A stretch of DNA of 64,000 nucleotides from Lepidodermella squamata (GCA_047495785.1 JBLDXI010000002.1:2480001-2544000); one strand, 5' to 3'. Positions 2,632 to 64,000 are shown, counted from the stretch's first letter. Notes: generated by a model from the letters alone, not told the origin. Program-made: numbers and translations.

Positions 2632-3170
2632 AAATTCGAACGATATTCAAAAAAAGTCCTCCTTAATAGAAAATTACTTGATCTCTCACAAACTAATTTC
2701 CTAATAAATATTGCGACCATGATGAACCCAAGCCAAATTTTTTTCTGCCTTTATATGCTGCCTCGGCCGGAGCTAGGATTCGGGTTTATTAGGCTTATTA
2801 ATCCTTAGCTTTTCTGTGGGAAAGGGTGCACGAGCGGGGTCAAGGGGCGATGCGGAGACATGAGGAACGTCGATGTGACTCGTCACTATATTTACCGACC
2901 ACTTGTCGCCGAAAGTAACTCTGCAAACAAAGCAGCTCATGCGCGCGTATCGTTGATGCGAAGTGCCAGCCGCAAAAAATGACAATTTATATTACAGCAT
3001 CACGAGCGATTTTTTTCGCGTTGATTGCGCGCATGAAAAAAACATATTTGCAATTAAGGCGGTGATGAATCAATTAACAACTGAATGTGATTATTCTCGG
3101 CCGTTTTTTTTTTAAGGTGGAGGATTCCTTATATCGCCGACGTCATACTTTTTCTTTTCATCCGTGAAAC

Positions 3171-3762
3171 ATGAAAGCGATCCACGTTCTGAGTCTAGTC
3201 GTTTTAGGTGGGTGCTGCCTCCTGATGGGCGCCGCGGAGGCTATTTCGTGCTTCAACGCGACTCACGCTGTCCCGGCTCATATCAGCGATTGGCTGCCCC
3301 GAGACGCCTACGTGATTGACGGCTGCGAATGCTGCTCGGTAATTTTATTAAAGCACCAAATTAGAAATTGAATTCGGGCTAAACAAATACCGAAATTGAT
3401 TGTCTAATTCTAAATTTAGTTTGATTGACAGTTTATTTAATATAATTTGACATTATGTCGATTTTAGTCTTCAAATATTTCATATTTTTCTTCAGCGCGA
3501 GGCGCACGTACACGACGGTGTGGTCATTTTCCGTTGGGGCTGCGCTGCTAAGCAAGCGTCAGGATGCGCCGACTCGGTCGCGTTCGCCCAAGATACGGCT
3601 GCCCATGGCGCCGCTGAGTCCTGCAAATGCTGCAGCCCATTGTGCAACAAACAGCGCCGATGCGTCGACCCAACCGCCTCGCCCCTACTTCAAATCTCGC
3701 CCCTGGCCCATCAGCAGCCACAGTTCCCCGTTGAAGCCGATCAATTTCATCAATTTTATTAA
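3171..3762 (+). CDS. Small secreted Ly6/uPAR (three-finger)-like Cys-rich protein (2 exons: 3171-3338, 3496-3762)
   Basis: Signal peptide ending AEA|ISCF, RWGC, terminal CCSPLCN motif typical of LU domains; phase-0 GT-AG intron 3339-3495. Confidence 0.7.
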
Positions 3763-3915
3763 AATAATTAATTTTAATTAATAGCTGTAGTTGAACCTAC
3801 GACACCGATGCTAAGTTAAAACTGCCATTTTTTCCGGTTTTACTGAAAACATAAATTACAATAAAATTGTTAACCGTCGTTTCCAATCACTAATTCAGCT
3901 CTGAGGCAGTTTAGT

Positions 3916-6504
3916 TCAGCGAGGGCCGTAATCATCAGGACGGTGGGAACTTATCGGGCTAGACATGAATTCTTGCGGAATCTGCGAAAAGGTAACAGGG
4001 CTAGTCTGAGGCGATGTCGGGCTACCAACACGGATGCGAGCCATTTGCGTTGTAACCTCAGCCAGAAGAGGCTCCATACTTTCCGCACCGGGGTAAACCA
4101 TTCGGCACAGGTCCATCAGGCGTAGCATTTTCGTCGTATACAAACCGAATATAGCGACTTGGTCTAGAATGGTCTCGACCCGTTTTCGAGCGGCTAGTGG
4201 CGTCGATTGATGCGCCAACATTTCGACGGCCCGCAGGTAATCTTCGGCGATTAATTTTACCTTGGCGGATTCGACAAGGCCAGGTAAATCCGGGTTGAAA
4301 AACAGCAAACCGGCGATGAGGCCGAATTCCGCGACATTGACGCCCGCATTTTTCAAACTTCGCCCGGAATCTCGAGAGCCTGCGTCTGCTCTCTGGAGGC
4401 AAAAATAACATAAAAAATCAAGAAATTGAAAAATCGACTCACAGCAACAAGAATACTTCGAGATCTCGCCAGAGCCATACTCTGGGCATCGAGGTTGAAT
4501 ACGAGCGCTGTATCTGTGACAGGGTCGTAGTCGATGGATAATTGGAGTACTAGGATTGGGAATAGGGCGTTGCTGAAGAGCAGAATTCGATCGTTGACAT
4601 TGGTGAGCCAGTCGAAACCAGGCAAGTTTCGCGTGAATTGGAGCCCATATTTGAAGCACATGACAAAATTTCCCATCACTTCGCGCCAAATTTCCATTGG
4701 ACCCATTGTTTCTGTTGCATGGCATCGTTCCTTTTAAAAAATAACAAAACTAATAAGAAAACCTCAAAAATAAAAAATAGAAAATAAATAGAAATAACAA
4801 AAATATTAAAAACTGTTATAATCAAAATTTAAAAAAATTCAGAAAAATTAAATAAAAGTATAAAATAAATATGTTTACTTCGCTCATTTTAGCGAGAATT
4901 TTGGTAGCCTGAACAACTTTTCCAATGAGCCACTCGGTCCTTGCGCCTTGATCAAGGGACAATTGCCGGCAATAGGGAAGCGGCGATGGGGGGTTAGCCA
5001 GGAACCTTTCGTAAATCCTCAACGGATCCATCTCAGTCGGAAGCCATTTGTATCCATTGCGCTCTAATTGCTGTAGATCGATGACGCCCGACCCAGAGTT
5101 GTACAGCCACAGGAGATTTGCTGTTGGGAGTGAAGCGTTGCTGTCGGATCTCTTCTCCCTGCGAATCGTATCTATCAGCTCGCTGTACTTGTTGAAAATG
5201 GACGGCGCAACCACAGCGACGGCTTTACCTCCCGAAGAAGATTGAGTTGAAGAGCTGTTAGTGCTGTTTGTCTCGAAAGAAGCGTCGTTAGCAACGCGCA
5301 TCGCGCCGGTTGAAAACGACGGTCCGGTAGCTTCGAAAGACGCTGGAAATTCGCTCCTGGTTTGCTCGAAAGACGGCGTTTGAACTATCGAACTAGGAGT
5401 TTGGACGGGCGCTACGATTTGCTGTATTTCTTGCTGTTGTGAAGGCGCGATTGTTTTACCGCTGTAATACTCTTTCACGGCTTCTCGTATGGCTCTTTTC
5501 TGTGCTTGAGATCGGCGACCTGCGACTGATCCGAAGGGAGACATTCCAACGGCCATGCATTTCGCGATCCGACAAGCAGCGCATCGCATTCGGCTTTGCG
5601 AAACACGGCTGATTTGCGAAAGGGATGACCCGTTATCGAAACATTTCCCTCCAGTCAGGCAACACGAGGTCCCGGGGAAGATACCAGCTCGCCCCTGGGT
5701 ACTACCTCGAGCCCAAGCTCCAGAGTTATTGTTGTTAGGACCTCCGAGGCGACGGGCGAAACGACCGTAAAAAGCCTTGCAAGCATCGCACGTAACAGCT
5801 CCGAAATGAACCTGAAATTCGAAGTTAATTAAGGTGGATTTAGAATTGAGAAATTAATAATTTATACCCCGGTGGCTGCCCATCCACAAACAGAGCATGG
5901 CAATTTGGAAACATCTAGGTTGTCCATTTCACTAGAATCCAAGCCGTCGCTGTTTCTTGATTTTGGATCCAAGGGAAATTTCGTCTCGTCCATATTCGCC
6001 TCGTCATCGCTCTCGCTTTTTCGGCTAAATACGGCGTCAACATTTCTCGTTACACTACTGCTAGCGGTTACTCCGAAAACCAGCGGCTTTTCAGCCTCAG
6101 CGAATCCGGCTTGAAGACACCGCCGGTACCGGCATGATTTGCAAATCGAATGCGACCGGGCAGCAGCAGCAGCAGTTGGCGACTCATCCTCAGCAGTTGT
6201 TACCTCAGGCTTCACTGCATTGGAAGGCGACGCCTTGAACTTACACATACATGGCGCTAATTCCAGCCGTTCATTCGATTTCATAGAGTGTCGATAGAAA
6301 AATTTCTGGAAATAAAATCAAGCATAAAATCGAATTATAATTCCGTTTATAAGAAGGTCATACTCGACACGCTTGGCACAGCTTTTGCCGGCTCGTTGAT
6401 GCATTGAGCGTGATAGGAAATTCACAGGCGTAGCAAGTTTGCTGAAACATATCAAGAGTCGCGTAATCTTCGTTTTTAACTGGCAGACAGTCTAAGCTAA
6501 GCAT
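3916..6504 (-). CDS. Nuclear receptor with two tandem C4 DNA-binding domains (2DBD-NR-like); exons 6504-6364, 6305-5868, 5811-4879, 4730-4443, 4392-3916
   Basis: DBD1 CYAC-x15-CQACRKFFYRHS...CKSCRYRRCLQAG; DBD2 CSVC-x13-CDACKAFYGR...RCAACRIAKCMAVGM; LBD signature FTRNLPGF..L...DRILL and EFGLIAGLLFFNPDLPGL. All four introns GT-AG and frame-consistent. Confidence 0.85.
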
Positions 6505-11291: not shown

Positions 11292-11644
11292 CAAATTATT
11301 GTCTCCACCTTGAAACCGCTAATGTTTTAATTTTACGTCGTTTTGTCACAATATACGTTGGGTCACGTTATTTGCACGATATATTCAGTTTGCTTTTGTT
11401 TCATTTGACAGAGAAAAAAGCTAATAAAATGTCATCATTATAATTATTTATTTTTCGTCATTAAGGTGGATGTTGATAATTGTCCTTTTCAGCGGAAGTT
11501 GGTTTTTAATTATTATTATAATTCTCAATCAATAAATTTTTAATCGCCAGCGGCAGATTTTCAAAGAGACAACAAAAACAATGCAATAATAATAGTAACA
11601 ATGACAGAGTTTTAGCTTCGTCGCGGTTTGAAGCTGCCGGATTC

Positions 11645-11866: not shown

Positions 11867-12503
11867 TTTTCACACAGGTTCAAAAAAATGTGATAAAAAT
11901 CTGAGAATGAAAGCGGGGTAGATGAAATAATTCAATTAAAAATGTGGTAATGCGGCGGTCCATTATATTTTTTTAGCGACGACCTCAATAAACAGGTGAT
12001 GAGATCAGTTTCGACCTATTAACAAGTGGTTTTACGACGGGCTTCTGCTGCTGCTCTAATGTGGTTCAGAATGAATGCAATGCCATTATGCTATCACTAT
12101 ATTCTACATCAAGTTGATAATAAGGGCTCAAGTACTACTGGCTTCGACTAGCTATTATAATGCTCGTTTTTTTTATCTTGCTCGCTCGACGTATATTATA
12201 GTATATGCTGCGGGAATGAATGTTGTATAATGATAAAATACACAAAAACATTTTCTGGCCGTTTTTGTTGGACAGCAGCCGTAGTTCGGCGCGGGTGTGT
12301 ACGATGAGCCATTTGCTCGGTAAATAAAGGTGTTAGGCTGGTCTAAATAGTAAAATACCCTAAAACGATACAGGCATATACAGATCAAATAGTGCCGAAT
12401 CATCCTTTTTATTTGTTATCAAATCACCAAAGTGCCTAGTATAAAATCAACATAAGTTAAATTGATTGAAATTGCAAGTTTTAAGGTGGATAAAATCACA
12501 AGT

Positions 12504-14448: not shown

Positions 14449-14489
14449 AGTCAACAAAACATCGAGTTCCATGTTAGTTAAGGAGGATG

Positions 14490-19077: not shown

Positions 19078-22000
19078 ATGACTGATGAGGCGGACCAAAG
19101 CTTTCAGGCCGAGGTTCAGCCTTCAACCGATGTTCAAAATCTTGTGGTTTTCATCAAAAAGTCTGTGGTGAATTTACTTCAAGATGAAGTTAACGGCCCG
19201 ATTCTTGATACTGTCCTTGCCTCCAAAAATACGCAAGACCTCTTGAAGCGCTTCGTCAGTGATGCTCAAGTTCCATCAGTTCTTATTCAGCGTATTTCAA
19301 CATCTAAAGGTGCGTGAAAATCATGGTTACGCTGTATTTACTTACCTATTATCGGAACTCTGGTTAATATTAGACACGGAGGATCCCGCCGAATCGGAGG
19401 ATCGTGAGAACATCCAATATCAAGTTTCCAGCGAGATTCAGTTTTTCAATGGGAGAGTTCAAAAGTATGATTGTAAAATTTTCAATTGCAATGCATTTAC
19501 CTTTGCTTTTAGTGTAATAATTGTGAAACGCTCTGACGCGATTGATGTCGAGAGACCCTTCGCAGGGCAGCTCTGTTGCATGAACTTCGGCGAGGGCTCT
19601 CCTTATGATATGCTTCACGCTTATCTTCGCTCCGCTATGCGGCCGTTCTTTAGCTCTTATGCGAAAGAGTCTTCCAAGGCCGATCGGTAAGTGCTATGAG
19701 AAATTATGCTTAGTAATTCTAATTGCGTTCAACTTGGCAGTGAATGTGACAAAATTGTTCCGGAAGTTGAGAAGAAAATGGCTGAGCTAGAAATGGGCCT
19801 TCTTCATTTACAACAAAATATTGGTATTCCAGACATCACTTTGCCAATTCATCCCACCGTTCAAAATGTTATACGTCAATGCGAGGAACAAAATCGCAAA
19901 GCCAAGGCTGCTGACTTCGGTGACAAAGTCGAAGATTCGACATTTCTCAACCAGCTGCAATCTAATGTTGCCCGATGGACTCGAGAAATTCAAAAAATTA
20001 CGAAGCTCGAGCGGGATCCTTCCTCTGGCACAGCGATGCAGGAAGTTAGATTCTGGTTGGAATTAGAACGAGCCTTATTGCGAGTTCAAGAACGGCGACA
20101 AAGCCTCGAGATAACGTTGACTCTCGACATTCTGAAGCAGGGTCGCCGCTACATGGCTACAGTCCAGTTTGACGCTGATACCGGATTGAAACCAGCGATT
20201 GAGCAGGCTGCTGATTACAATCAACTGATGCGAGATTTTCCTTTACCCGATCTGCTGGCAGCTTCTGAGATGGATCATGTTCGTAATGCAGTAGTCGGTA
20301 TTTTCTCGCACATGAAGCGTTTGAGAAACACGTCATACCCACTTTCACGCGTTGTTCGCCTGATTGACGCGATTTCTCGCGACTTGACTCAACAAATGCT
20401 GCGAATCCTGTCGGCTCGTCGCCTGATTCTACTCGAATATCAAGATTTTGAGCCTGTGATGATGGCAGCGTCTGACGTTTTCTCAACCTGGGAGGACGAG
20501 TACGAAAAGCTTCAAAGCGTTATGCGTGATATAGCGAAACGCAGGCAGCGCGACGAACAGGCCAAATCAGCCTGGCGTAAAGTTCCGATTCACAAAAAGT
20601 TGCAACAACGCCTCGAGCAACTGCGCCGATTCAGGCAGCAGCATGAGCAGCTTCGTCAAGTCATCGGCCGAGTTTTGTCTCAGCAGCAACAGCGGGCTAT
20701 TCAACCTCCACCTAGTGCATCTGGTGACAACGCTGTTGTCCCCCAACTAGCTGATAATTCGACAGCTGCTGATGAAGTTCGCTTCGCTTATGACACAGTT
20801 CGTGAGGTCGATGTGCTGGATTTGAGCCGTGAAGGGCAGGAAACGTGGGAAGCAGCCCTCCGCCGCTACGAAGAACGCATCAACCAAATTGAGGCTAGGA
20901 TTGCATCTCAACTGCGTGACCAACTTGCAGCGGCGAAGAGCACGAACGAGATGTTCCGAATTTTCTCGAAATTCAACCCGCTGCTGGTTAGGCCACATAT
21001 TCGCGGAGCAATTCGCGAATATCAGCAGCAACTTCTCGACCGAGTTCGCGATACTGTTGAACTGCTGCAATCGAAACTGCGCGAGCCATTCGAGCAAACC
21101 GGGGTGTACAAAATGATGTGCTCGATGGATTTGTGCCCGCTAACTCGGCAGGTCACTCGAGCGAAAATCTTGGAATACCAACTCGATTTGTTAGTTCGAA
21201 TGGTTGAAGACGTTCTCGGCCGTGAATGGCAGAACCATGTCGATGGCCAGAAGCTGAAATCTGAGTTTGATGGCCTGAGAGTTCGGCTGAACACGAGTGA
21301 TTTAGTCGAAGAGTGGCTTTTGAAGGTGAAGGAGCGACCCCTTCAAATCACCGGACCGATTTTCAGCGTTGAGTCGAGTCGAAGCCGAGCGACGCAAACT
21401 GGTCGGATTTTACTGCAGTTGCGAGTGAATTTCCACGACGACGCAATCACGCTGCATAAGGAAGTGCGAAACTTGCGTTCCCTTGGTTTCCGCATCCCGC
21501 TTCAGGTTTCGAACAAAGCGCATCAGGCTCAACATTTGTACCCGCATGCGATTTCGCTGAAGCAGTCGATTTCAGTCTACGAAAACACAACTCGCCATTT
21601 GAGTGAACGGCCGCAATTGCGACCATTATTGGCGACTACGATTCGCGACTTGCATCAGTACATTACCGACGGCTCGAGTTTGGTGTGGGAAGACTACAAA
21701 CTCGAAAATTACGTCCAGCGCTTGACAACCCTGGCTTTGGCTTACCAAGACCGCGTCAATGACGTGGTAACCGCTGCTAATAAGATCGAGCAGCTGGTCG
21801 GTCAGTTGAACACCTGCGAGTACCAGGAAGTGGCTTTTTCCGAAATCATCGAGTCCGTTCAAAGCCTGGTCGACGATTTGAGTTTGAAGCAGTATTCGAA
21901 CCTTGCCAGCTGGGTTGCCGATGTCGATCGTGACATTGAAAAACGCCTGGCTGCTCGCCTCGAAGCCGCCTTAAATGCCTGGAACGCCCAGTTGGTGCAG

Positions 22001-25000
22001 GAGGGTAGCGGCGGCGAATCGAGCGCTCCGAAAATCGTGATTGAATTGCGAATGACCCAGCAGTGCTTGTATGTTGTCCCGCCGATTGAGCATGTTCGCG
22101 AGCAGTTGATGCAATCGCTCGATGGCTGCCAGAATGTTGTTTTGCGGCTTCGAAGGCTGAGACACGCCCGCCTGCAGGTCGCGCAGCAGCGTGACGTTTC
22201 GTCGGCTGAATTGACTTACCGCCAGATTTTCCTGCGACTACCTAGTGGCCTGTCTCCGATTGAGAACTGCTCGGCTTCGATTGAAAAACTCGTCAGCGAA
22301 CTGACGAAATACGTCGATTCTTGGCTGCGCTATCAGGCCCTGTGGGATTTGCAACCAGCCACCCTGTACGCCCGACTTGAAAACCATCTGCCCAACTGGA
22401 TGGCGACGATCAAGGGAATCCGCGATGGCCGGTCGACTTTCGACACGGCTGAGACAAAACGCTGTTTCGGCCCTGTAGCCGTCGATTTCGCGAAGGTTCA
22501 AACGAAAGTTTCGTTGAAATACGACTCATGGCATAAGGAAGTCGTGCAGCGTTTCGGTCAACTCGCCGCGGGTGAGATGCATGACGTCTATGCTGCGCTG
22601 TCGAAGGCTCGTGGTGATTTGGAGCAGCAACCGACTGAACCAGCCACGACGAGTGACGCCGTCTCCCTAATCACGGCTGTTCAACAACTGAAGCGGAAAA
22701 TCCGGGCTTGGGAGAAGCAGGTTGAGTCGTACCGTGAATGCGAGCGGCTGCTCGAACGGCAACGTTTCCAGTTCCCGTCGACCTGGACCTATGCCGAGCA
22801 ACTGGGCAGTGAATGGACTGCTTTGTCTGAACTACTCGGCCGGAAGGACTTGGCTATCCAGACCCAGGTCGCGAGTCTTCAGACCAAAGTTTTGGCGGAA
22901 GAGCGAATTGTTGAGGAGCACACGGTCGATTTCCTGTCCGAGTGGGATAAGGAAAAGCCAGTTGAAGGCGCTGTCCGGCCTGACCTAGCCATGCGAACCC
23001 TGACGAAATTCGAGCAGAAAATGTCGCGTTTGTTGAATGAGCGAACCGCGATTTCGAAGGCGAAAGAAATTCTCGAAATTGGCGATGTTTCCGGCAGCGG
23101 TGGTCTGTCCGCCGCTGAATTGCGAGCAAATGCCGATCGAACCAGCTCGGCTGCCGAGGAATTGAACGACCTGAAGACCGTGTGGTCTGAACTCGGCAAA
23201 ATCTGCACTTCGATCGATGAGCTGCGCGATCGGCCCTGGGCAACTGTCCAGCCTCGCAAATTGCGTCAACAACTCGAACAGTTGATGCAGCAACTGGTCT
23301 CGCTGCCAGCCCGAATGCGCCACTACGCCGGGTACGACCACCTTAAAAGAACGCTGCAGGCCCACATCAAGAGCAGTTCTTTGATGTCTGAGCTGAAATC
23401 GGAGGCGGTGCGTGATCGCCACTGGAAGGAACTCCAGCGCCGCCTTAATCAACGCTGGTCACTGACTGAGTTGACCCTCGGGCAACTTTTCGACGCAGAT
23501 CTCGGTCGGAATGAGAATGTTGTTCGCGATATTTTGGTCATTGCCCAGGGTGAAATGGGTCTCGAGCAGTTTTTGCGAACTGTCAACGACTATTGGCGGT
23601 CTTACAATGTCGAGTTGACGACTTACCAGCAGAAATGTCCTCTGATTCGAGGCTGGGACGACCTGTTCTCACATTTGAGGGAACATCTAAACAGCGTTAC
23701 GGCCATGAAATTGTCGCCGTATTACAAGCAGTTTGAGGACGAGGCCGTTACCTGGGAGGACCGTCTCACCAGGTTGAGCGTGGTTTTCGATACCTGGGTC
23801 GATGTGCAGCGTCGTTTCGTGTACCTCGACGGTGTCTTCTCCGGCTCGGCTGATATCCGCCATTTGCTGCCGACTGAATCGCAGCGTTTCGGCACGATTT
23901 CATCCGAGTTCGTCACTCTCATGCGACGCGTTGCTAAGGCGCCGCAGGTTCTCGACATTCTCGGCATTCCGAACCTGCAAAAGCAGCTGGAACGCCTCTG
24001 CGAATTGCTGACGAAAATCCAGAAAACTCTCGGTGAGTATTTGGAGCGGGAACGCGCTGCTTTCGCCCGTTTCTACTTCGTCGGCGATGAAGATTTGCTC
24101 GAGATGATCGGTAACAGCAAAAACCTCGGCCGCCTGCAACGCCACCTGCGAAAAATGTTCGGCGGAGTCAACTCGCTCGAGCTTAAGGAGGATCAGTCCG
24201 CAATCATCGGCGTAGTCTCACGCGAGGGCGAGGCTATCAAACTGCACCAACCTGTCAATTTGGTTGACGTCCGCCTTAATGAATGGCTCGCGGCTCTTGA
24301 TGCCCAACTTCGCTTCACCCTGTCGCAGCAACTCATTTTGTCACTGCGAGATTTGAGTGCATTGCGCCAGTCTGCCCAGGGCATTACCACCGAGGCGTTT
24401 TTGAAATGGGTTGACACCTACCCGTCTCAAATCATCGTTCTAGCCGGGCAGGTTAACTGGTCCGAGTCGGTTGAAAACAGCTTGGAAAACCAGCAGGGCA
24501 ATCTCGGCCCGATTCTTCAATTCCTCGAAACTGTTTTGAGCATCCTAGCCCAGGCGGTTCTGACCGAACAACCCGCTGTTATGCGAAAGAAACTCGAAGG
24601 AATGATCACTGAAATGGTGCATAAACGAGATGTTACCCGCCATCTCGTTGCCGCGAATTGCAAATCCGCGAAGGCGTTTGAATGGCAGTCTCAAATGCGT
24701 TTCTACGTGGATCCGTCGAAAATCAGCGATTCGCAGCGTCTTTTGCGTATCGAAATGGCCAGTGCCAAGTTCTTCTACGGTTTCGAATACATCGGAGTCG
24801 CTGATCGGCTGGTCCAAACCCCGCTGACCGACCGCGCATATCTCGCGATGACCCAAGCCCTGTCGTTCAAACTCGGCGGTTCGCCCTTCGGACCAGCCGG
24901 TACTGGTAAGACTGAGACCGTGAAAGCGCTCGGTCAACAACTCGGCCGCTTCGTCCTTGTGTTCAACTGCGACGAGTCGTTCGATTTCCAGGCCATGGGT

Positions 25001-28000
25001 CGTATTTTCGTCGGTTTGTGCCAGGTCGGTGCTTGGGGCTGCTTCGACGAGTTCAACCGTCTGGAGGAACGCATGTTGTCCGCTGTCTCACAGCAAATTC
25101 AGACCATCCAAACCGCTCTACGTGATTCCGAATCCAACACTTCGGACCGCATTTCCATCGATTTGATTGGCCGGTCGGTCCGTGTCAACACTGATATGGC
25201 CATTTTCATCACGATGAACCCGGGCTATGCTGGTCGTTCGAACTTACCCGACAATTTGAAGCAACTTTTCCGCAGTTTGGCCATGACGTGTCCTGATCGC
25301 CAACTTATCGCTCAGGTATTTAAAATTTAAAATTTCAGATTCATTTTAAGAAAATTTAAAATTTCGAAAAGTTTTCGAAAATTAAAGCGTTCAACTTGTA
25401 AACAATAATTTTTGCTTCCACTATAAAAATTGAATTATTTTTTCTTAATTTATTTAGCAATTTATGCTGATTTTTATTATTTTTCTAATTTCAGGTCATG
25501 CTCTTCTCGCAAGGTTTCCAGGAGGCTGAGCTGTTAGCCTCGAAAGTCGTGCCATTCTTCAATCTCTGCATGGAACAGTTGTCCCCACAGAGCCATTACG
25601 ATTTCGGCCTTCGAGCCCTCAAGAGCGTTTTGGTCTCCGCTGGCGGTATCAAACGTGATTATCTACGCCGAAATGACGTTTCAGTTAACGAACAGTCGAT
25701 CCTCATCCAATCGATCGTCGAAACTGTCGTACCGAAACTCGTCGCTGATGATATTCCACTGCTGAATGCGCTGTTGGTCGATGTCTTCCCCGGCTCGTCG
25801 TACAATGCCGCGAAATTGGATCAACTCAAGGACAAAATCCGAGCTGTCTGCCAAGAAATGCATCTGACCTACGCTGATTCACCTGAATCAACTGGTTACA
25901 TGTGGGCGGAGAAGGTCTTGCAGCTGTACCAAATCTCGCTGCTTCACCACGGTTTCATGCTGGTCGGCCCGAGTGGCAGCGGCAAAACCACGGCCTGGCG
26001 CGTCCTCCTTAAAGCGATTGAGCAGTTGAACAACGTCGAATACGTCGCTCACGTCATTGAACCGAAGGCGTTATCGAAAGAAGCGTTGTACGGTAACTTG
26101 GACGCAAACACCCGCGAGTGGTCGGACGGTCTCTTCACCGCACTGCTGCGTCGCATTGTCGATAACGCTCGTGGCGAGCTGAAAAAACAACATTGGATCA
26201 TTTTCGACGGCGATGTCGACCCGGATTGGGTTGAAAATTTGAACTCCGTTCTGGATGATAACAAACTGCTGACCCTACCGAGCGGTGAGCGTATCGCCTT
26301 GCCTCCGAACGTTCGCATCGTTTTCGAGGTTCAAGACCTGCGTTACGCGACCCTCGCCACCGTTTCCCGTTGCGGTATGGTGTGGTTCTCGGACGAAGTT
26401 ATCGCAGTTCCAATGATTCTCGACCACTTCCTGGCCACCCTGCGCGCTATTTCTCTCGACGAATTCGAGCAGCCGATGGCAAATGTCGAGTCGGGCGAAC
26501 AATCCCAGCAGCAGCAACAAGCTGTTACCTCGCAATCGTTGCTCGCCCAGCAAGATATCGCCTCGATTCTGGCGCCGTATTTCGCCCCGAACGGCCTGGT
26601 CGTTCGCTGCCTGGAGGAGGTCGCATCGTACGATCATATCATGGAGTTCACAAAACTTCGCGCTTTGACCACGCTTTTCGGTCTGTTGAACGCCGGCGTT
26701 CGTAACATTCATCGCTACAACGCCTCTCACCCGAATTTCAACCTGAACACCCATCAATTGGAGATCTACGTGCCTCGTCTTTTGGCGCAGAGCATTGTTT
26801 GGGCTCTGGCGGGTGACGGTCGTCACAAGTACCGGATTCAGTTGTCGGACTATCTCCGCAAAATCTACACAGTCCCGTTGCCGGAGAAGAACCCGCTGGT
26901 TGATTTCGATTTGACACCCACGGGTGACTGGGTCCCATGGCAGTCCCGTGTGCCGCAAATTGAGGTCGAAAGCCACCGAGTTTGCGCGCCTGATGTCGTC
27001 ATCCCGACCTTGGATACTGTAAGGCACGAGTCTCTGCTCTCGGCCTGGCTAGCCGACCACCGGCCGCTGATTTTGTGCGGTCCGCCTGGTTCGGGTAAGA
27101 CCATGACTCTGCTATCAGCTCTGAGGTCTCTACCCGAAATCGACGTTGTTGGGTTGAACTTTTCGAGCGCTACAACTCCGGAATTGCTGTTGAAAACCTT
27201 CGATCAACACTGCGAATATCGTCGAACGCCAAATGGAATCGTCCTAACCCCTCGCCACCCTACAAAATGGTAAGAATCGCATTATTTTCGATACTTTGTA
27301 AAATGTATATAATTTTTTATTTAGGCTGGTGTTGTTTGCTGATGAAATCAACTTGCCGGATCTTGATCGTTACGGCACTCAACGTGTTATCGCCCTGATC
27401 CGCCAACTGGTCGAACGTGGCGGTTTCTACCGGCCCTCAGACCAGCAATGGGTCCGAATTGAACGACTTCAATTCGTCGGCGCTTGCAACCCGCCGTCGG
27501 ATCCTGGCCGCAAACCACTCTCAGCCCGTTTCTTACGCCACACCCCGGTCATTTACGTCGATTACCCTGCCGAGGCGTCTCTGCGCCAAATCTACGGCAC
27601 TTTCTGCCGGGCTCTCCTGAGAGGTCAATTGACCCTTCGAGCGTATGCGGAACAGCTGGCTTCGGCTATGGTTGAGCTTTACCTGATCGCCTCAGACCAC
27701 TTCACGCCGGACCAACAGCCTCACTACGTCTTTTCGCCTCGTGAGTTGACGCGTTGGACCCGAGGTGTGCACGAAGCGCTGAAACCACTCGACTCAGTGC
27801 CCCTCGACGCGATGGTCCGTTTGTGGGCCCACGAAGGCCTTCGTCTATTCCACGACCGTCTCATCTCACCAGAAGAACGCCGATGGGTTGAAGACCAAAT
27901 CGACGGAGTCGCCTTGCGCCAATTCCCGAGCATTGACCGCGATAAAGCACTCGCCCGTCCTTTGCTCTATTCAAACTGGCTGTCGAAGTACTACGTCCCA

Positions 28001-31000
28001 GTCGAGCGAAATCAGCTGGCTGAATACGTCCGTGCTCGGCTGAAAACGTTCTACGAAGAAGAATTGGACGTTCCATTGGTTTTGTTCGACGACCTGCTTG
28101 ACCATGTCCTTCGCATCGACCGAATTCTCCGCCAGCCTCAGGGCCATTTGCTGCTTGTCGGTGTTTCAGGCGCTGGCAAGACAACACTGACGCGTTTCGT
28201 CGCCTGGTTGAACGGCCTATCGATTTTCCGGGTGAAAGTCCACGCTAAATACACGGCGCAAAATTTCGACGACGATTTGCGCGTTGTTTTACGCCGAGCT
28301 GGCTGCCGGGGTGAACGCATCGTTTTCATCATGGACGAGTCTAACCTGCTGGACTCGAGTTTCCTCGAGCGAATCAACACCCTGTTGGCAAACGCCGAAA
28401 TTCCAGGCCTGTTCGAGGGTGATGAGCTAACAACGCTGTACACCCAGTGTAAAGAAGGCGCCGCTCGCGAGGGTCTGATGTTGGACGGCCAGGAGGAGAT
28501 GTACAAGTGGTTTACGGATCAAGTTGCCCGTAATCTTCACGTCGTTTTCACGATGAACCCATCAGCTGAGGGTCTGCGAAATCGCGCCTCAACATCACCT
28601 GCTCTTTTCAACCGTTGCGTAATCAACTGGTTTGGTGAATGGTCGCCCCTCGCGCTATTCCAGGTTAGAAAATTAAAAATTCGAAAAATAATATTTTAAG
28701 GTGGATTTTTTTTATTTCAGGTCGGTCGTGAGCTTACGAGCAAACTTGACATCGATCGATCAGACTACGCTCCACCTCAAAAAGTGCCGATCGCTTCGCC
28801 TCATCTGCCACCATTGGCGAACCCACCGAGCTATCGCGATATGATTGCTAACGCCTTCGTCTTCGTCCACCAGACTGTCGAACGGCTGAACGCTCGCATC
28901 GTTGCTCGAGGAGGCCGCCCGCCACCGATCGTCACGCCTCGTCACTATCTCGACATGATTCAGCAATTTGTCAAGCTTTTCAATGAAAAGCGGTCGGATC
29001 TTGAGGAGCAACAGCTCCACGTCACTGTTGGTTTGAACAAACTAGCCGAGACGGTGGAGCAAGTCGAAGAGTTGCGCCACTCGCTCGCTCAAAAGCACAT
29101 TGAGCTCGAGCAGAAGAACCAGGCTGCTAATTTGAAGCTTCAAGAAATCGTCGCCGATCAACAAGAAGCTGAGAAAGAGAAACAAAAGGCCGAGCAATTG
29201 CAAGAAGCGCTGACCCGTCAAACCGCGGTCATTGCCGAGAAACAACAACTTGTTCGAGCCGATTTGGCCCGAGTCGAGCCTGAGCTACTCGAGTCTCAAT
29301 CGGCTGTTAGAGATATCAAGCGTAAAGACTTGGTCGAAATCAGGTAATTATGCGTAAAAAATTAAATTTTTCATTATTAAGGCGGATTTTTCAAAAATTA
29401 GATCGCTTCAAAACCCGCCCGCCCCTGTCAAATTGGCTGTCGAGTCGGTTTGCACGCTTTTGGGTGAGAATGATCTCGACTGGAAAGCGCTGCGTGGTAT
29501 CCTCGTGCGCGACAATTTCATCCAGCAAATTTTGAATTTCGACGCCGAGAAAATCACGGACGAAATTCGTGAGCGTATGAAGTCTCGATTCATGAGTCAC
29601 CCTGACTACACCTACGAAAAGGTGAACCGTGCGTCAAATGCCTGCGGTCCTCTCGTTCGTTGGGCGACAGCTCTTATCAACTACTCTGACATGTTGAGCC
29701 GAGTCGAACCGCTTCGTATGGAATTGTCTCAAATTGAATCTGATGCCAAGACGAACAAAGTTCGAGTCGAGGAGGAAACTGCTCGTATTGCCGAGACCGA
29801 GCGGCGTATCCAGCGGTACAAGGACGAATATGCTCAGTTGATTCGTCAGGCCGGTACGATCAAGTCGGAACTCGTCGTTGTCCAGACTAAGGTCGAGCGA
29901 TCAGTATCGCTGATTCGCAGCCTGGAGGACGAGCGAGATCGTTGGAAGTCGTCGGCTGATGCTTTCCGCCAGCAAATGTCAACGTTGAACGGAGATGTGA
30001 TGCTTTCGGCGTCTTTCCTCGCCTACGCCGGTGCGTACGACCAGCAGCAACGCGCGGCGTTGTGGGGTGTCTGGCAGCGCCACCTTAACGCGTCTCGAAT
30101 CGCCTTCCGCCCAGACATGGCTCGAATTGAGTACCTATCAACGCCTGAAGATCGGTTAAGGTGGCGGTCGAACGGGCTACCTGCCGATGATCTGTGCATG
30201 GAAAACGCTATCTTGCTGCGCCGCTATTGCCGCTACCCGTTGATCATCGACCCGAGTGGCGAGGCGCTTGAGTTCATTCTGAGCGACTACCGCGAGAAGC
30301 GTATTGTTACCACCTCGTTCTTGGACGACTCGTTCCGGAAACAACTCGAATCGGCTCTTCGTTTCGGTAATCCGCTGTTGGTCCATGACGTCGATCGATA
30401 CGACCCTCTGCTGAACCCGGTCCTGAATCGCGAGTTGCGGCGAGCTGCAGGTCGTGTCCTGGTCACCCTGGGTGATCAAGAAATCGACGTCTCGCCCAGT
30501 TTCCTCGTTGTTTTGGCAACGCGAGACCCGGCCGTTGAACTGCCGCCAGATCTCAGCAGTCGAGTTACCGTCGCTAACTTCTCCGTCACCCGGTCCGGGC
30601 TTCAATCTCAGTGCCTTAATCGGGTCTTACGAGCTGAACGGCCTGATGTCGACGCGAAACGAAGCGATTTACTCCGTCTCCAGGGCGAGTATGTCTTCCG
30701 ACTCCGCCAACTCGAGCGGTCGTTGCTGCAAGCCCTCAACGAGTCGAAGGGCCGTTTGTTAGACGATGACACCATTCTAGCCCAACTCGAGCAACTGAAA
30801 GCCGAGGCGGCTGATGTCGAAAAGAAAATGGGAGAGATGGACACGGTCTTGGCTAACGTCGAGGCTGTTTCGAACCAGTACAGTCCGCTCGCGACCGCGG
30901 CTGTTGACGTGTATTTCCTGCTGGATTCCCTCGCGAATTTGCATTTCCTGTACCAGTTTTCGCTGCAATTTTTCCTCGATTTGTTCAACGCGATTTTGCC

Positions 31001-33699: not shown

Positions 33700-35397
33700 A
33701 AAAATCTATGCAGTTATTCAGAAAACTTCTATATTATTGACATTGTTAAGGTGGATTTTTGTTAGACATACTATATGTCTTAAAACGGCCTTTGAAATGG
33801 ATTCCAGTCCTAACCAAATTTGCGCAATTATTTCTCGCTTCCATTACGCCGTGATACCGATTGCTATTCTTTGTTGAACCAGGAGTGCTCGCTGCTGCTT
33901 TGGCAATTTTTAACTCGTGTTTCTCGTGTGTGATTCTTATAGCAATTATATTTACCTGTTAAACAGTCGTATTATTATTATACTTCAAAGTGATTGGAAC
34001 AAATTTCTAGTTGTGACAAACATGATCATTACACGTGCAGCAATTCGATCTAGCCCTGCGAATTTTTTCTCGTGGAATTGACAAAAATTAATGGTGTTAA
34101 CTTTTGAGTGAAATATTCAGCCTGTAGTAGTCATATGTTGCGTTTGCGGTTATTTATTATTATTTCGTCAAAGTCGATGAAGGGTGCATGCTATTTCGTG
34201 TTGAACGCTTTATCTTTAGAAACACAGATTATACTATTCGGTATTATTTGATGAGTAGATCCGCGTTGAAGTTCAAAGAATCATCAATAAAATGGTTAAC
34301 TTGCTTTCATATATTCAGGGTTGGTTGCAGTTTTGGTTCAAAATACGGTGTAGTCCAAGAAGCAGCGTTGTCTTTTACGTGGTCTTAACTGACCTAACTT
34401 CGGAAGAAATTGCAGGCAAATTGAGAATTTCAGACAATTTACCGGTAAAAAATGACGCCATGTCAAATTTTTGGCTGCCGCAATGCAATTTTATACATAA
34501 AAACGGAAAGTTTTCTTTCGGATTTTCCAGATTTCCTTGGCAGTGAAATGGGAATGAGTTCCCTGGCCAATACGAGATTTTCTAATTCATGTCTAATTTT
34601 TTCGCATCCTTTCAGTTTCGTACAGGTCTCAACGCACTTTTTCACATTTTTATTATTTATCACCATGGCGTTCTACTGCAGGTCTCTTCCGGCCATTTCC
34701 AGACTGGTCTTATCACTCTGCGTTATTTTCATGATCGGTTTCTGCCCAGTGGGTTGTAGAAAAAGAACTGGATATATCGTGGGATTACGCTAGTTTTTAA
34801 CAAATTAAGGGGGATTTTTTTCAATTTGATTATTCACTCGAATGATATTTCAAATCAAACCGGGTCTTATCAAATCGGCATCAATCTGAAATTGTAAATT
34901 TTTATTGCTGAAAGGTATGACGTTGAACTCTGGACATCATCTGAATCGGCTGAATTACTGAAGACCTTTACCATGTATAGGTGATGAGGCCGAAACGCTA
35001 GAGTTTAAGATGTCTTTCATGTCACTGTTATCTACTGAATCCTGAGACTTGAATCCCACCCAACGGTAGCAGCGGCTTCTAAACTCAAGAATTTTACTGC
35101 TCAGCTGTTGAAAAAGCAAATATCAACATTTTTTAATTATTTGATTTATTAACCAATTTATAAATGTTTCCAAAATTTAGATGATCGACAATATCGCTGT
35201 CTCTCGTAACAAATTGATTAACACCACGACTCCACCGATACTCTTGCCTCCAATTGTACCTGGCCAATCACGCGAATCCTTATGAAACAATTTCTAACTT
35301 TTGACAACTTGAACTTTTATTGTTTATCAGCCGAATAAATGCTTTTAATTATATTATTTAAGCTAGACCTTTTTGAGTTGAAATACTTTTGTCGAAT

Positions 35398-53898: not shown

Positions 53899-55851
53899 GA
53901 AAATCCCTCGTCATAAAATTTGTTGTTTTTCGACTGCAACTAAAATTGTTTTAGAGACATTTGCTCATCACGATTATATATTTAACGCTCTGTCTGCAAA
54001 TCTACTTGTTATATCTTAATGCCATGAAATGTGTATATTTAATACGAAATGTAATAAACGAATTATTATTTACTGACATTTAACCATCTTTTGCCGTGTT
54101 TCGCAATTTTGTTGAGGCCAAAACAATAGCAGAGATGAAAAAGTGAAGCTTAACGGGATGCAGCGATGCATGAGGCGATAATAGGGCTGACGTGTGCGAT
54201 ATGTGCGATAGTGCTTTTTTCAGACTTCGCACCGGAAAAAACATTCAGAGTGTAAAATGTTTCGTTTGTAACTGACGCGAACTGGGCTCCGTTTCCAGAC
54301 CACCTTAAAACTCCTACCACGTGTTTTGCGTCGTCATGCTGCAGTTCAATCGAACCCAGTGATGAACTATGAACTAAGACTTCTATACGAAATCGATTGG
54401 CTATAATAGATCGAAGCTTAACCTTTGTCAAGATCTGTTCAGCAGGCAATAGATGTTTCATCAAGTTACCACAAGCTCATGCGAGATTCAGACAAATCTT
54501 ACATTCATGACGTGGTTAGTGAAAAAGCTGAATATCTGTTACATAGGTATATTTAATCGAATCAACAGCTTGAGCGGTAAATAATGGAGCTACATCAGCA
54601 TCGTAAGTTGAGAATAAAAAGCTGCGATATCTCAAGAGCTTTTGTTCCTCAAATAGTGTTGGATGGACGAATTTCCTTACAATTGCGTCGATTAGAATGA
54701 ATAATAAAGCTGAGTTTATTGTTTGAGGTGCCGAAAAGTCGAATGCAAGATCGTATACATCACTGTTTTAAGAAAACAGTTGACAAGTAGAAAGTCTTTG
54801 TTCCTGCTAAAAAAGTGAAATACCACTTGTCATTGATGAAACTATAGCTCACTATCAAATTCGCAGTATCTCTAACCTACAGTCAGAGTCAGATGACTCA
54901 AAATAAACAAGCAAATCCTTTTCACTTGTTGGAACCACGAGTTCATTTTCATTCAAGACGTTTGATTCGGCTCTCCTCCGCCCCTGCGGCAATCTTACGT
55001 CGGCCTCGGCTTGCTTCAATTAGCAGCGCAGCTCTTCTGCCTGTGTTAACCCTGCTAAATGAAATATCCACCTAGCAACTGAAATTCAAAACAAGCAGGC
55101 ATCGCGCATTATTACTACTAACAAACGCCTCGCTAACCGGCCGGTGGAATTTGGCAACGAGCCAGTTGAACTCGGTAAAAAAAAATAAAAAATTCCACCG
55201 GTCCTTAAAAAAAAAACAAGAAATGCGCGCAAATATGCCCGAGCCCAGTAAATTGCCCTGGGCCAAACAGGACGGTGACTCAATCTCCAACAATAGGAAA
55301 AATTACGCGAAAAGATCTGTGAAAATTCTTATGCACTCTTAGCTTGAAATCCACACCAAATTTCTCATGCAGCTCAAAGTTCCCCATTTTCCAGTCGATA
55401 TAAAAACTAAATTAGTGATTGAAAAGTCCAGACTGCTTAGGGAAAGTCATTCGTTCGGTTTATTAAAACATTACGCGACCCGTTTCATTCTCGGTAAAAT
55501 GTCTCCTTCGAAAGAACACGTACATGGCAATATTTCATCACGTATCAGCAGTTCAAATAATTTCCTTTCGGAAGCACGATTTCACCGTCATTTCATGAAA
55601 CGACAAAACAATATCTCAGAAAATACGTAATAATTCAACCAGCATTATATGAACGGCATTGCATTATAAAACTATTAGCAAACCACTTCAAGTAAAAAAT
55701 AAACTAAAGCAATATTTTATCTATTTTGGGGACAAAGAACACAACCAGACTTCTTGCATCGTGTGATTTGGACTCTGCTGCATTGGAATAAATGGCAAAT
55801 TTCTGTATTAAAGACAACATAATCGTTTAATGTAAAATGAATAGCTTTTGG

Positions 55852-60796: not shown

Positions 60797-61882
60797 ATGA
60801 ATTCAAAAGCGAGATCTGCAGCATTGCATACATCAGTTCCGGCTAAGAAGCAGCAAGCGAAATCGCAGAAGCCTCCTTTGAATGCCGAAGGCAATATCAG
60901 ACCTGCTGCCACTCGCGTGATTAAAGATTTGTCATCGGTTGAAAATTCTAGTCCGAAATCTCCTCAGGCTTCGAAGCTGTTGCGTGACTTCCGGTACGGC
61001 CCTCCGAAATCCGTCGCAGAAATTCCGTCATCTGATGAGAATCGGAAAGCCTTCTGGTGGATCGAGACATCAGATTCTGCTCCTATCCAACTTCCTAAGC
61101 TATCCGATAAAGACGATGATAGTGGCCCACGAGTCAGCAGCATATCTGCGTCGAATTCATCAAACGACGTTGAACAAGAGGGAGAGGATAGCCAAAGCAA
61201 TCAAGAACCACCTTTCCGTCCGATGCACACCGACATCATTACTGATACTAACCGCCGGGTCGTAGCATCTCGAGCCGCTATGGAGCGTGAAGAGGAGGGC
61301 GATATGCACACAGCGGGCGCTGGTGATATTTTGTACCGTTGGCGGTTGAGGCGAAGGCTCGAACTTTATTCTGCCTCCAAAGATGTCACAACACCGATAG
61401 CTACCCGTTCCACTTCAGCTTTCTCATTTACTGAGACTTGTAAAAGTTCAGAGAAAGAAACTCAAGCATCTATGGGCGTAGATGTTGCTACCCAGGCCGA
61501 GGTCGCGCCGTGTCATGCTGCTTCGAGAAGCGATCATAGTCAATCTACGTTTTCGACGATCAGAGAGCCATCTCCTATGACCAAGGACGACTTTGAAGCC
61601 ATTTTACATCGCAGTGCTGAAAAAGCTAATAACTCGGGATCAGAATATACCAAGCAAGTATTGGATAGCATTGCCAGGAGACTGTTCTCCGCGACCACGC
61701 AGTCCCCATCTCCTGACGTCAAGCCAAAGCAGGAATCAATGAAGAAATCCGAGCGACCAAAATCAGTCTCTTTCATGCATCATCCGGATGAATTGAACGA
61801 CAATCTTCTTTCGTGTTTATTAAACCGGCGAGCCTTATTGCTGGCTGCGCTCGATAGAATCGATAGCGTTTTATACTCATGA
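60797..61882 (+). CDS. PROSER3-like Pro/Ser-rich protein (may have an upstream exon)
   Basis: Low-complexity protein with islands DFRYGPPKS..FWW, DILYRWRLRRRLE and a C-terminal D.LL..L..RR..L helix, as I recall for PROSER3 orthologues. Confidence 0.6.
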   Translation: MNSKARSAALHTSVPAKKQQAKSQKPPLNAEGNIRPAATRVIKDLSSVENSSPKSPQASKLLRDFRYGPPKSVAEIPSSDENRKAFWWIETSDSAPIQLPKLSDKDDDSGPRVSSISASNSSNDVEQEGEDSQSNQEPPFRPMHTDIITDTNRRVVASRAAMEREEEGDMHTAGAGDILYRWRLRRRLELYSASKDVTTPIATRSTSAFSFTETCKSSEKETQASMGVDVATQAEVAPCHAASRSDHSQSTFSTIREPSPMTKDDFEAILHRSAEKANNSGSEYTKQVLDSIARRLFSATTQSPSPDVKPKQESMKKSERPKSVSFMHHPDELNDNLLSCLLNRRALLLAALDRIDSVLYS

Positions 61883-62011
61883 TTTTTACTAGTTGTGATA
61901 TTACCTGTTTTTCTCACAATGCTCAATTTTTCACGAATTCGTGTGAATCAAACTGCAACTCTTGTTACAATTCTGTGGTTTTTCTTTAGAGGCTGTTAAT
62001 TGCTCAATTTT

Positions 62012-64000
62012 ATGGCTAATACAGCAAACCTGGCAGATTTAGCTCACCGCGAGTACCAAGCCGGGAATTACGAAAGAGCGGAGCATTATTGCCTTCGCTT
62101 GTGGCAACAAGAACCCGATAACACAGCTGCTCTACTATTGCTAGCTTCAATTCATTTTCAAGCTGGCGAACTCGACAAATCTTCACACTACAGCCAGTTG
62201 GCGATTCGGTTGGATCCAATGTTAGCAGAAGCCTACAGCAATTTGGGCAATGTTCATAAACAGCGCGGACAGTTGGTCGACGCATTGCGAAACTATCAAA
62301 ACGCCGTTCGTTTAAAGCCAAATTTTGTGGACGGCTACTTGAATATGGCAGCTGCCATGGTGGCTGCCGGAGACCTGGAACAAGCGATTCAAGCATATAT
62401 CACAGTCTTAACAATCAATCCAGTGAGTTTAAATTCAAATGAGTTCGATTGATTTTTATATTTCTGTGCGATATATTTCAGGATCTATATTGCGTTCGAA
62501 GTGATTTGGGGAATTTATTCAAGGCCCTTGGAAAGCTCGATGAAGCCAAGGTTTGTTGTGTTTCTCATCTTATTTTATGTATAGGCCACTAACATAGCTT
62601 CACTATTTATGATTTCCTATATGGTTACGGCTTGAAAGATATATGAGATCACTTAATAACATGTTTATTTTGATGCTTTTCTTCACACCAACAACAGGCA
62701 TCAGCTCGAGTATCAAGTTGTTATCTATTGACTACGTAGAAAATACCCAGAAACTCGAGCTGTTTCACGGGGGCTTGAAATTGCAAAATTTGTGGGTTTC
62801 TAATTTCTTTCTTCAAAGAAATTCATGATGTGTTAAACGGCTTGGGTTCTATGTATAAATGAAGTCAAAGTGGAGGTGATGCCCGCTTCCTACTCGATGC
62901 CGAGCCACGCGCAATCTCTTCTCGCCTGGAAAGGTTTAAATTGATTCTTTCTGCCTGAAGGTAAGGCGGCGGTCTCAATCACTACCACGCTGATTGTATG
63001 TTTGCTGTTGATATCATACACATAACGGCTTGCGATTTTGATCCGCTATACCCAATCTCAAAAAACTTGAAATCTGGATCAACTTGAAGAATTTTACATT
63101 TTCCTGCAATTTGACGTGATTACCCCGACCATACGTTATGGAACCATCTTTGCAATGTTTGAACGAGTCGCGAAATCAGTCCAATCAATTGTAAATGAAC
63201 CTAATTTTACGTGTGATGTTCGAAATTGGACTGGAGACGTGACATAGTGTGGAGTTCTTCGCAAAGATTTGAATGGCTGTTATTCAAATATAAGTGAATC
63301 AGCCAAATTTATTGCGACGAGTTTCACTGAATTTTTCTGCAAAAGTGGTTTTACAACGTTGAAGGCGCCGTTAAAATCGCATGCAATTGTCTAATAATTC
63401 CATTTCAGGAGCTGGTGTGATATTGAGAACTTGACATTAATATTGTTTTTATTGCGGCTGATCCAGGCTTGTTACGTGAAAGCTATCGAATCTCAGCCGA
63501 CGTTTGCTGTCGCCTGGTCAAATCTGGGTTGCATTTTCAACGCCCAGGGCGAAATTTGGCTAGCGATCCATCATTTTGAAAAAGCCGTCCAGCTCGACCC
63601 GTCTTTCGTCGACGCCCACATCAACCTCGCGAACGTCCTTAAGGAGGCTCGAATTCTCGACCGAGCAGCTACTGCCTATGTCAGAGCGTTACAGTTGTGC
63701 CCGAATAATGCTGTTGTACTCGGAAACCTGGCCTGCGTGTATTACGAGCAGGGCCACATTGAATTAGCCGTTGAAACTTACAGAAGGGCGATAGAATTAC
63801 AGCCTAATTTTCCTGACGCCTACTGCAACTTGGCGAATGCTTTGAAGGAACAAGGACGGGTGGCTGATGCTGAAAGGTGTTACGAAACTGCTTTACGGCT
63901 ATCCCCAGGTCACGCGGATTCACTCAAGTATGAATGATTAAAATTAAAAAATTTTAAGGCGGAATTTTATATTTTTTTCAGTAATCTTGCCAATATCCGT
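62012..64000 (+). CDS. OGT: O-GlcNAc transferase, 5' TPR region (exons 62012-62422, 62482-62550, 63467-63927, 63982->end)
   Basis: [12 protein letters not shown]...[59 protein letters not shown], near-identical to animal OGT TPRs. Confidence 0.97.

Follow-up and report, generated by a model that had tools for sequence, protein, structure and literature searches.

An exact, strand-independent DNA word, in large excess in Lepidodermella squamata, is imposed on coding sequence

Introduction

Why does an animal genome spell one short sequence over and over, on both strands and even within the exons of a highly conserved gene? The question is raised by a stretch of 64,000 nucleotides from Lepidodermella squamata (GCA_047495785.1, JBLDXI010000002.1:2480001-2544000), hereafter the window, which covers positions 2,480,001-2,544,000 of contig 2 in an assembly of 121 Mb and 151 contigs. 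An earlier note on this DNA, made from its sequence alone, had drawn attention to at least 26 copies of a nine-base-pair motif, here called the word (core pattern TTAAGGNGG), where about two were expected by chance, and had proposed that it behaves like a DNA-level mark and is a candidate for an undescribed system.

An excess of exact copies

All 26 copies are present where they had been reported, 13 on each strand, and the chance figure was right: dinucleotide-preserving shuffles of the window give 1.29 +/- 1.22 copies (maximum 5), and Markov models of order 1-5 give 0.9-3.7. Under a third-order model, TAAGGTGG, TAAGGAGG, TTAAGGTG and TAAGGCGG, all 8-mers of the word, take the first four places in over-representation among the 8-mers of the window. 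Across 264 kb, comprising the window and 100 kb on each side, we counted 64 copies against 3.6-9.8 expected (Markov order 1-5, the higher orders being already inflated by the word's own sub-words) and against 11 reversed-control words.

The excess extends to the whole assembly, where TTAAGGNGG occurs 10,372 times (5,266 forward and 5,106 reverse), compared with 4,784 for the reversed word and 2,261 for TTAAGGNNGG, a control in which the half-sites stand one base further apart. The form TTAAGGNGGA is found 5,712 times (control, 1,687), and the extended 14-mer TTAAGGNGGATTTT 948 times versus 14 for its reversed control. The local enrichment of the earlier note is thereby borne out genome-wide, and these counts imply some 8,000 excess copies. 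Low-order composition is ruled out as the cause by the Markov expectations of order 1-5 and by the spacer control. Furthermore, copies are intact in contigs of three independent runs, which rules out an assembly artefact for the copies covered.

One rigid unit

The anatomy of the word was derived from the 64 copies in the 264 kb. Its form is (A/T)-TTAAGG-[A/C/T]-GG-A-(T-rich), 10-14 letters in all, with TTAAGGTGGATTTT as an oligo form. The base at -1 is A or T in 55 of the 64 copies, and the inner N of TTAAGG-N-GG is T in 28, A in 20, C in 14 and G in 2 (among the 26 window copies: A 8, C 8, T 9, G 1). After GG comes A in 42 copies and C in 14, with a preference for T at +10 and +12; where the surroundings are AT-rich, roughly every second GGA copy runs on into at least three T. 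The upstream flank is rich in A and the downstream flank in T, the picture being the same from either strand.

The word behaves as a single rigid unit. Its exact 10-mer occurs 42 times against 0.9 expected, whereas the 27 single-base variants at the nine fixed positions occur 0-14 times each against 0.5-2.2, that is, near background, the sole variant clearly above it being the change of the final A to C. Only the 1-nt spacer is enriched (2-nt spacer, 3 copies versus 3.7 expected; 3-nt spacer, 4 versus 3.1), and the half-sites TTAAGG and GGNGGA show no enrichment beyond the copies inside the full word. No second motif stood out within +/-100 bp of the word, nor was a conserved base or initiator found at a fixed distance within +/-60 nt. 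Close direct pairs are more frequent than for the control (205 versus 31), an excess that regional heterogeneity of density alone would give; the pairs have no preferred arrangement or fixed spacing, the distances being spread over 20-217 bp without a mode.

Copies written into the dynein gene

The gene at 19706-33697 encodes the cytoplasmic dynein 1 heavy chain, as judged by an end-to-end alignment to the human protein in solved structures (E = 0); it is not an axonemal dynein. It is a single-copy gene, no second dynein-1 copy being present in the assembly. Its introns are few, tiny (53-170 nt) and AT-rich, one exon measures 5.6 kb, and its codons are GC-rich, with a GC content at third codon positions (GC3) of about 0.6. 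Fifteen copies of the word belong to this gene:

21966..21974, minus strand: exon copy; the sense strand reads GCC GCC TTA AAT (A-A-L-N), human A-G-L-R
23338..23346, minus strand: exon copy; D-H-L-K in the frame xxC CAC CTT AAA, human E-F-V-Q
23440..23448, minus strand: exon copy; R-R-L-N, human K-R-L-H
24183..24191, plus strand: exon copy; sense CTT AAG GAG GAT (L-K-E-D), human L-N-E-D
24271..24279, minus strand: exon copy; V-R-L-N, human P-K-I-N
26004..26012, minus strand: exon copy; V-L-L-K, no human alignment at the site
28696..28704, plus strand: intron copy TTAAGGTGGATTTTTTTT, sense, 16 nt before the acceptor
29377..29385, plus strand: intron copy TTAAGGCGGATTTTT, sense, 16 nt before the acceptor
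30080..30088, minus strand: exon copy; R-H-L-N, human H-H-L-Q
30156..30164, plus strand: exon copy; sense TTA AGG TGG, L-R-W as in human, with two rare codons
31154..31162, minus strand: exon copy; I-R-L-K, human I-K-L-K
31300..31308, minus strand: exon copy; TCC GCC TTA ATC (S-A-L-I), in a variable loop
31799..31807, minus strand: exon copy; V-L-L-K, human V-M-L-K
32627..32635, minus strand: antisense copy with a T-run, in the intron 32557-32685, for which a spliced contig gives support
33746..33754, plus strand: 3' untranslated region (UTR) copy TTAAGGTGGATTTTT, about 49 nt past the TGA; intact in three independent runs

Twelve copies had been assigned to coding exons, and this count stands, with 11 in dynein frames and one in the tetratricopeptide repeat (TPR) exon of OGT; the TTA codons at 21966 and 31300 and the TTA-AGG-TGG at 30156 were likewise found as described. 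When synonymous codons are exchanged among identical amino acids, the dynein reading frame (13.1 kb) is expected to hold 0.27 +/- 0.52 copies (maximum 3 in 2,000 shuffles) instead of the observed 11. This is the comparison that the earlier note had proposed as a check, and it rules out codon usage or peptide content as the cause.

The word could be spelled synonymously at 47 positions of the dynein frame, and 11 of these are filled, including 7 of 15 in the frame xxC-CNC-CTT-AAx. Over the 75 long open reading frames (ORFs) of the region (91 kb of the 264 kb), the word fills 26 of 194 spellable positions, with 4 of 8 in OGT. We also considered dynein as a unique hot spot and rejected the idea, since its load mostly reflects length and many compatible peptides (11/47 filled, versus 15/147 elsewhere). 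An estimate from the dynein codon table puts the excess at about 40-80-fold in frames of common codons and in those requiring the rare TTA and AGG alike, and the fold-excess in non-coding DNA is similar to that in coding DNA (about 40-70-fold).

Ten of the dynein exon sites can be aligned to the human protein, and none of them carries an insertion or deletion. At eight of the ten, the residues differ from the human ones exactly where the word requires it, mostly conservatively (human to here, IKLK/IRLK, VMLK/VLLK, HHLQ/RHLN, KRLH/RRLN, PKIN/VRLN, LNED/LKED and AGLR/AALN among them). The remaining two are the conserved L-R-W, written TTA-AGG-TGG, and one variable loop. Read against the human protein, these replacements would appear to have run towards the word. 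A word written into coding sequence through rare codons and mild amino-acid changes indicates a reader or a driving force that acts on the DNA itself.

Copy density amounts to 297 per Mb in the long ORFs and 214 per Mb elsewhere. Within ORFs 18 copies are antisense and 9 sense, which matches the frames available in dynein (33 antisense, 14 sense) and indicates no preference relative to transcription. Such similar coding and non-coding densities, together with an orientation dictated by the frames, point to a pressure on double-stranded DNA and not to an RNA signal.

Contigs of three public runs, two of which behave as RNA, were compared with positions 28,001-34,000 of the window. In the RNA-like runs, GT..AG joints remove 33,282-33,334 and 32,557-32,685. 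Of the six or seven dynein introns, three contain the word (twice in sense and once in antisense orientation), and copies in the 3' half of the gene are spaced about 0.7-1.1 kb apart. One DNA run shows two haplotypes over 28001-34000 (e.g., at 31388-31715), with introns diverging more than the rest; among the matches listed, the second haplotype differs at up to 21 of 328 bases (about 6%). In this second haplotype the intron copy at 28696 is intact despite small deletions just upstream.

Copies elsewhere in the window

The other 11 copies of the window are the following:

2658..2666, minus strand: copy TTAAGGAGGA, antisense to the Fz-BTB ORF (1882-2631, plus strand) and 27 nt beyond its stop
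3054..3062, plus strand: copy TTAAGGCGG, non-coding and in AT-rich surroundings; it opens a direct pair, the second copy following at a distance of 58 bp
3112..3120, plus strand: copy TTAAGGTGGA with a T-run before it, second of the direct pair with the copy at 3054
5829..5837, plus strand: copy TTAAGGTGGA, antisense, lying within the minus-strand ORF 4825-5853 or at its edge; unsure whether exonic or intronic
11461..11469, plus strand: copy TTAAGGTGGA; the surroundings are very AT-rich, and an acceptor-like TTTTCAG follows after 23 nt
12481..12489, plus strand: copy TTAAGGTGGA, antisense to N-acetylglucosamine-kinase paralog 1 (12504-13658, minus strand) and 15 nt beyond its stop
14478..14486, plus strand: copy TTAAGGAGGA, 3-4 nt past the stop of kinase paralog 2 (14490-15485, minus strand), antisense
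34805..34813, plus strand: copy TTAAGGGGGATTTTTTT, non-coding, the only N=G copy of the window
54300..54308, minus strand: copy TTAAGGTGG, non-coding, about 400 nt past the ORF 52507-53898
63639..63647, plus strand: copy in the OGT TPR exon, sense, frame xTT AAG GAG Gxx
63954..63962, plus strand: OGT intron copy TTAAGGCGGA, sense, 19 nt before the acceptor

Three further copies lie in an OGT exon just beyond the window end. In the ORF 1882-2631, a Frizzled cysteine-rich domain is followed by a BTB_2 (KCTD-type) domain, both confirmed by Pfam. The copies reported within about 50 bp downstream of stops (2658, 12481, 14478 and 33746) measure 3-49 nt from them. Altogether, six copies fall at most 60 nt past the stop of an ORF, where about one is expected, and four of the six follow real gene ends (Fz-BTB, both kinase paralogs and one other gene). 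The claim that intron copies occur in either orientation holds in its main part, the intron around 32627 being supported by splicing; the copy at 5829, counted among them before, lies within a minus-strand ORF, and its assignment to an intron is unsure.

Uneven density across the genome

Density rises from a genome mean of 86 copies per Mb to 242 in the 264 kb and 406 in the window, that is, to about one copy per 4 kb in the region; the dynein and OGT genes reach as much as one per kb. On contig 1, positions 1-560,000 are at about the control level, and positions 600,000-1,750,000 (1.15 Mb) at about four times that level; the low-density start of this contig may be a repeat-rich chromosome end. 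No polarity of orientation was visible along the 264 kb. The close pairs listed lie on 13 of the first 20 contigs, with none listed on contigs 4, 5, 6, 8, 10, 14 and 18, whose sizes are not known. Two axonemal dynein loci of 5.3 kb each hold two copies (contig 32) and one copy (contig 24) and no control words. Copies and close pairs together span at least 15 contigs, which are not placed on chromosomes. A role in chromosome identity or nematode-like X recruitment, among the suggestions of the earlier note, finds no support in this spread over at least 15 contigs or in the change of density within a single one.

Three further loci deserve mention. A multi-copy element on contigs 13 and 20 bears two copies of the word 62 bp apart, with more copies nearby (e.g., contig 13, 3092973-3093034 and 4104173-4104234; contig 20, 1859445-1859506); this is the only case observed of the word travelling with a repeat, and pairs belonging to the element are a small minority of those listed. 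On contig 2, a Ty1/copia-type long terminal repeat retrotransposon with a 5-kb ORF (about 2,396,371-2,401,395; gag, integrase and an SH3-like domain) contains one copy. On the same contig, a minus-strand ORF of 1.7 kb (about 2,634,052-2,635,740) has an unusually high GC3 of 0.67 and no copy at its four spellable positions; it might be foreign or recent DNA.

Flanks, relatives and earlier descriptions

The copies do not share flanks. In-register flank identity is 11.5/40, against 10.0 at control positions, and the flanks of the kinase-paralog copies at 14478 and 12481 are unrelated to each other; the sole exception is a tandem paralogous gene pair with the word at the same codon. The termini of a miniature inverted-repeat transposable element (MITE) or another TTAA-targeting transposon were rejected as the identity of the word on account of these unshared flanks, the lack of inverted pairing at element spacing and the absence of indels at the dynein exon sites.

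The tandem kinase paralogs (window 12504-15485) have as their nearest relatives in the protein collection two metagenome proteins, 55-58% identical and in the same tandem order, on a 28-kb contig (counterpart at L023, 10001-12442). That the order is kept at 55-58% identity suggests an old duplication. In the 21 kb of this syntenic contig that were examined, the word has no copy and the control has two; about 5 copies of the word would be expected at the density of our region and 1.8 at the genome mean. This gives a weak hint that the word may be lineage-specific. A metagenome search with a dynein exon returned nothing above 51% identity.

The full-text literature, searched for the string, its degenerate forms and rotifer motifs, yielded no description, although a differently written motif could be missed; the matches to the string were primers, ribosome-binding sites and unrelated work. 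Thus, the suggestion of an undescribed system stands as far as such a search reaches. The canonical CTCF core CCASYAGRKGGCRS occurs 23 times genome-wide, against 12 for its reversed control, and CTCF sites of the standard form thus do not characterise this genome. A canonical CTCF site was rejected as the identity of the word, which differs from the core, the core itself not being enriched.

What reads or drives the word?

Whatever pressure maintains the word would have to act on double-stranded DNA, favour an exact asymmetric 10-11-mer alike in exons, introns and UTRs, and have the strength to prevail over codon preference and to go along with conservative replacements in a protein as well conserved as dynein. 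Our preferred reading, to which we give a probability of roughly 40%, is that the word may be the recognition site of one lineage-specific, sequence-specific double-stranded-DNA-binding protein, kept by selection. The putative protein, for instance a zinc-finger array or a THAP domain with its bipartite contacts to the minor and major grooves, would recognise some 10-11 bp as one rigid element, and selection would keep its sites dense across gene-rich DNA irrespective of orientation, whether in an exon, a tiny intron or a short 3' UTR. We infer both the binding and its effect; dense sites in exons, introns and UTRs, in both orientations, would point to a chromatin-level job needing many sites along genes (marking, organising or protecting active gene-rich chromatin) rather than to a promoter switch.

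We rank selection on binding sites first because any mechanism needs a reader of the word, because the position of copies just past stops and the spacing of about 0.7-1.1 kb in the 3' half of dynein hint at placement, and because the CTCF core is not enriched, which leaves an architectural role open. Several points weigh against it. Near-cognate words stay at background, whereas selected binding sites usually tolerate weak variants, and coding and non-coding DNA are loaded alike instead of copies being clustered in regulatory DNA, two observations that fit the drive considered below equally. To our knowledge, there is no clear precedent for an animal DNA-binding factor with one site per kb in the exons of housekeeping genes. 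Additionally, given the copy inside the Ty1/copia polyprotein ORF, restriction to host genes is not established, and the genome-wide figures are pattern counts, the sequence itself having been analysed over the 264 kb and two loci of about 5 kb.

The strongest alternative, possible though on balance unlikely in our view, is a molecular drive without function for the organism, in which a step of repair or recombination makes alleles with the word win in heteroduplexes. Biased short-patch repair would be one example; another would be an allele that, when bound, is shielded from breaks and then spread by gene conversion, so that the word piles up where it is tolerated. Parallels of this type are the uptake sequences of Haemophilus and Neisseria and, in E. 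coli, the CCWGG sites that Vsr repair favours. In frames of very different codon cost and in non-coding DNA the fold-excess is about equal, as expected of a bias that acts uniformly on each site, and the sharp specificity, with near-cognate words not in excess, agrees with a drive too. In effect, the uniform excess and the lack of enrichment of weak variants fit a drive at least as well as selection on binding sites. The absence of positional logic relative to promoters, the fixation of conservative replacements in a highly conserved protein, a regional variation in density such as recombination rate or sequence age would give, and the copy-free syntenic contig of a distant relative are further points in its favour. 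Nevertheless, such a conversion bias for a 9-10-mer is not known in animals, the six post-stop copies (versus about one) and the dynein spacing hint at placement, and a drive would itself need a protein that reads the word.

We regard as improbable the possibility that the word is the target of an enzyme that modifies or processes DNA, for instance a horizontally acquired methyltransferase or nuclease of bacterial type, with the modified word serving as a mark of self. Its rigidity, asymmetry, single free inner position and sharp specificity do resemble the sites of such enzymes, and it occurs on both strands. Sites of the restriction type, on the other hand, are usually avoided in genomes and not enriched. 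Rotifers are known to have acquired bacterial genes, including a DNA methyltransferase (PMC10406627), but the one rotifer enzyme of this type to have been characterised favours ACGT-type CpG sites (PMC10406627); the motif of this N4-cytosine methyltransferase is unrelated to the word and was rejected.

Thousands of dispersed copies on both strands, a sharp core with AT-rich non-coding surroundings and a regional variation in density also recall the Ruby motif of the nematode 21U Piwi-interacting RNA (piRNA) genes, and the word might accordingly act in front of thousands of minute, autonomously transcribed units. This we find more doubtful still: exon density (297 per Mb) equals or exceeds that elsewhere (214 per Mb), no base or initiator is conserved at a fixed distance within +/-60 nt, and no molecule starts or ends at the word in the run contigs, which cannot show small RNAs.

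A signal at the RNA level, either a branch-point/polypyrimidine module of tiny introns or a binding site in mRNA, was suggested by the sense intron copies, which lie 16-23 nt before an acceptor with a T-run after them, and by the complement of the word just past the stop in three 3' UTRs. The word is not known to pair with any segment of small nuclear or ribosomal RNA. The word occurs in both orientations in introns, exons and UTRs, as in the antisense copy of the RNA-supported intron 32557-32685, and its orientation in coding sequence simply tracks the availability of frames. The earlier note had argued on the same ground for a strand-independent, DNA-level entity and against a splicing signal, and we concur; an RNA-level signal is largely refuted by strand symmetry and appears very improbable. 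Finally, although the word begins with TTAA and a few copies lie inside the element of contigs 13 and 20, remnants, termini or excision footprints of a TTAA-targeting transposon or MITE family have next to no likelihood left and are refuted for the great majority of copies, which have no common flanks and no preferred inverted pairing or spacing and sit in dynein exons without indels, in agreement with the earlier rejection of transposon debris.

The consequences differ between the two leading explanations. If a protein reads the word, a new system of chromatin or architecture would operate in a lineage that does without the usual CTCF word, and the roughly 8,000 sites would map where it acts. 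If a drive is at work, it would be a measurable non-adaptive force bending the sequences of essential proteins. Whichever holds, the word lends itself readily to pull-down with oligos, to footprinting and to population tests.

Likeness to known systems

Several known systems share features with the word. Sites of CTCF and other insulators are asymmetric, about 10-15 bp long, read on double-stranded DNA, dispersed in thousands of copies and found in either orientation, within genes as well, and AGG-N-GG resembles part of the CTCF core; the sequence is nevertheless another one, in which G, preferred along with T by CTCF at the position of N, is rare, and we know of no CTCF sites placed in exons at one per kb by way of rare codons. 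The X-recruitment (MEX/rex) and pairing-centre motifs of nematodes, which are read by zinc-finger or condensin-loading proteins, likewise differ in density between regions, occur in both orientations and sometimes lie in genes; they are confined to one chromosome or chromosome end, in contrast to a word found on many contigs. The bipartite combination of an AT-rich and a G-rich part is typical of THAP recognition, and the THAP site of the P-element transposase (TTAAGTGGAT) likewise opens with TTAAG and continues through a G-rich stretch to AT. The likeness goes no further, since the word is longer by one base, leaves an inner position free and does not have its copies in transposon ends. The N=A form contains the Shine-Dalgarno sequence TAAGGAGG, and this identity with a bacterial ribosome-binding word accounts for most of the literature matches. 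We consider it a coincidence, given that N is T or C as often, that the host is a eukaryote with spliced genes and that copies lie in exons and introns.

The bacterial uptake signal sequences and DNA uptake sequences (USS/DUS) and Chi are alike in being short exact words with thousands of copies on both strands, preferred frames or peptides in coding sequence, a frequency inside genes well beyond what codon usage would give, and restriction to a lineage. The comparison with uptake sequences and Chi had been made in the earlier note, and the distribution observed here, with both strands, preferred coding frames and sharp specificity, fits it well. The bacterial words have a known uptake receptor or RecBCD, and Chi is polar to replication, whereas the present word has an animal host and no polarity over 264 kb. 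An animal counterpart, that is, a self-propagating or self-marking word that rests on a bias of conversion or repair or that tells the animal's own gene-rich DNA from foreign or mobile DNA, is conceivable, though on balance unlikely in our view. Genome-saturating exact words that reshape coding sequence are textbook knowledge in some bacteria, and we know of no described animal case. A dispersed DNA word, protein-bound or driven, is a known kind of system, and what sets this one apart, as far as we know, is so strong an imposition on animal exons.

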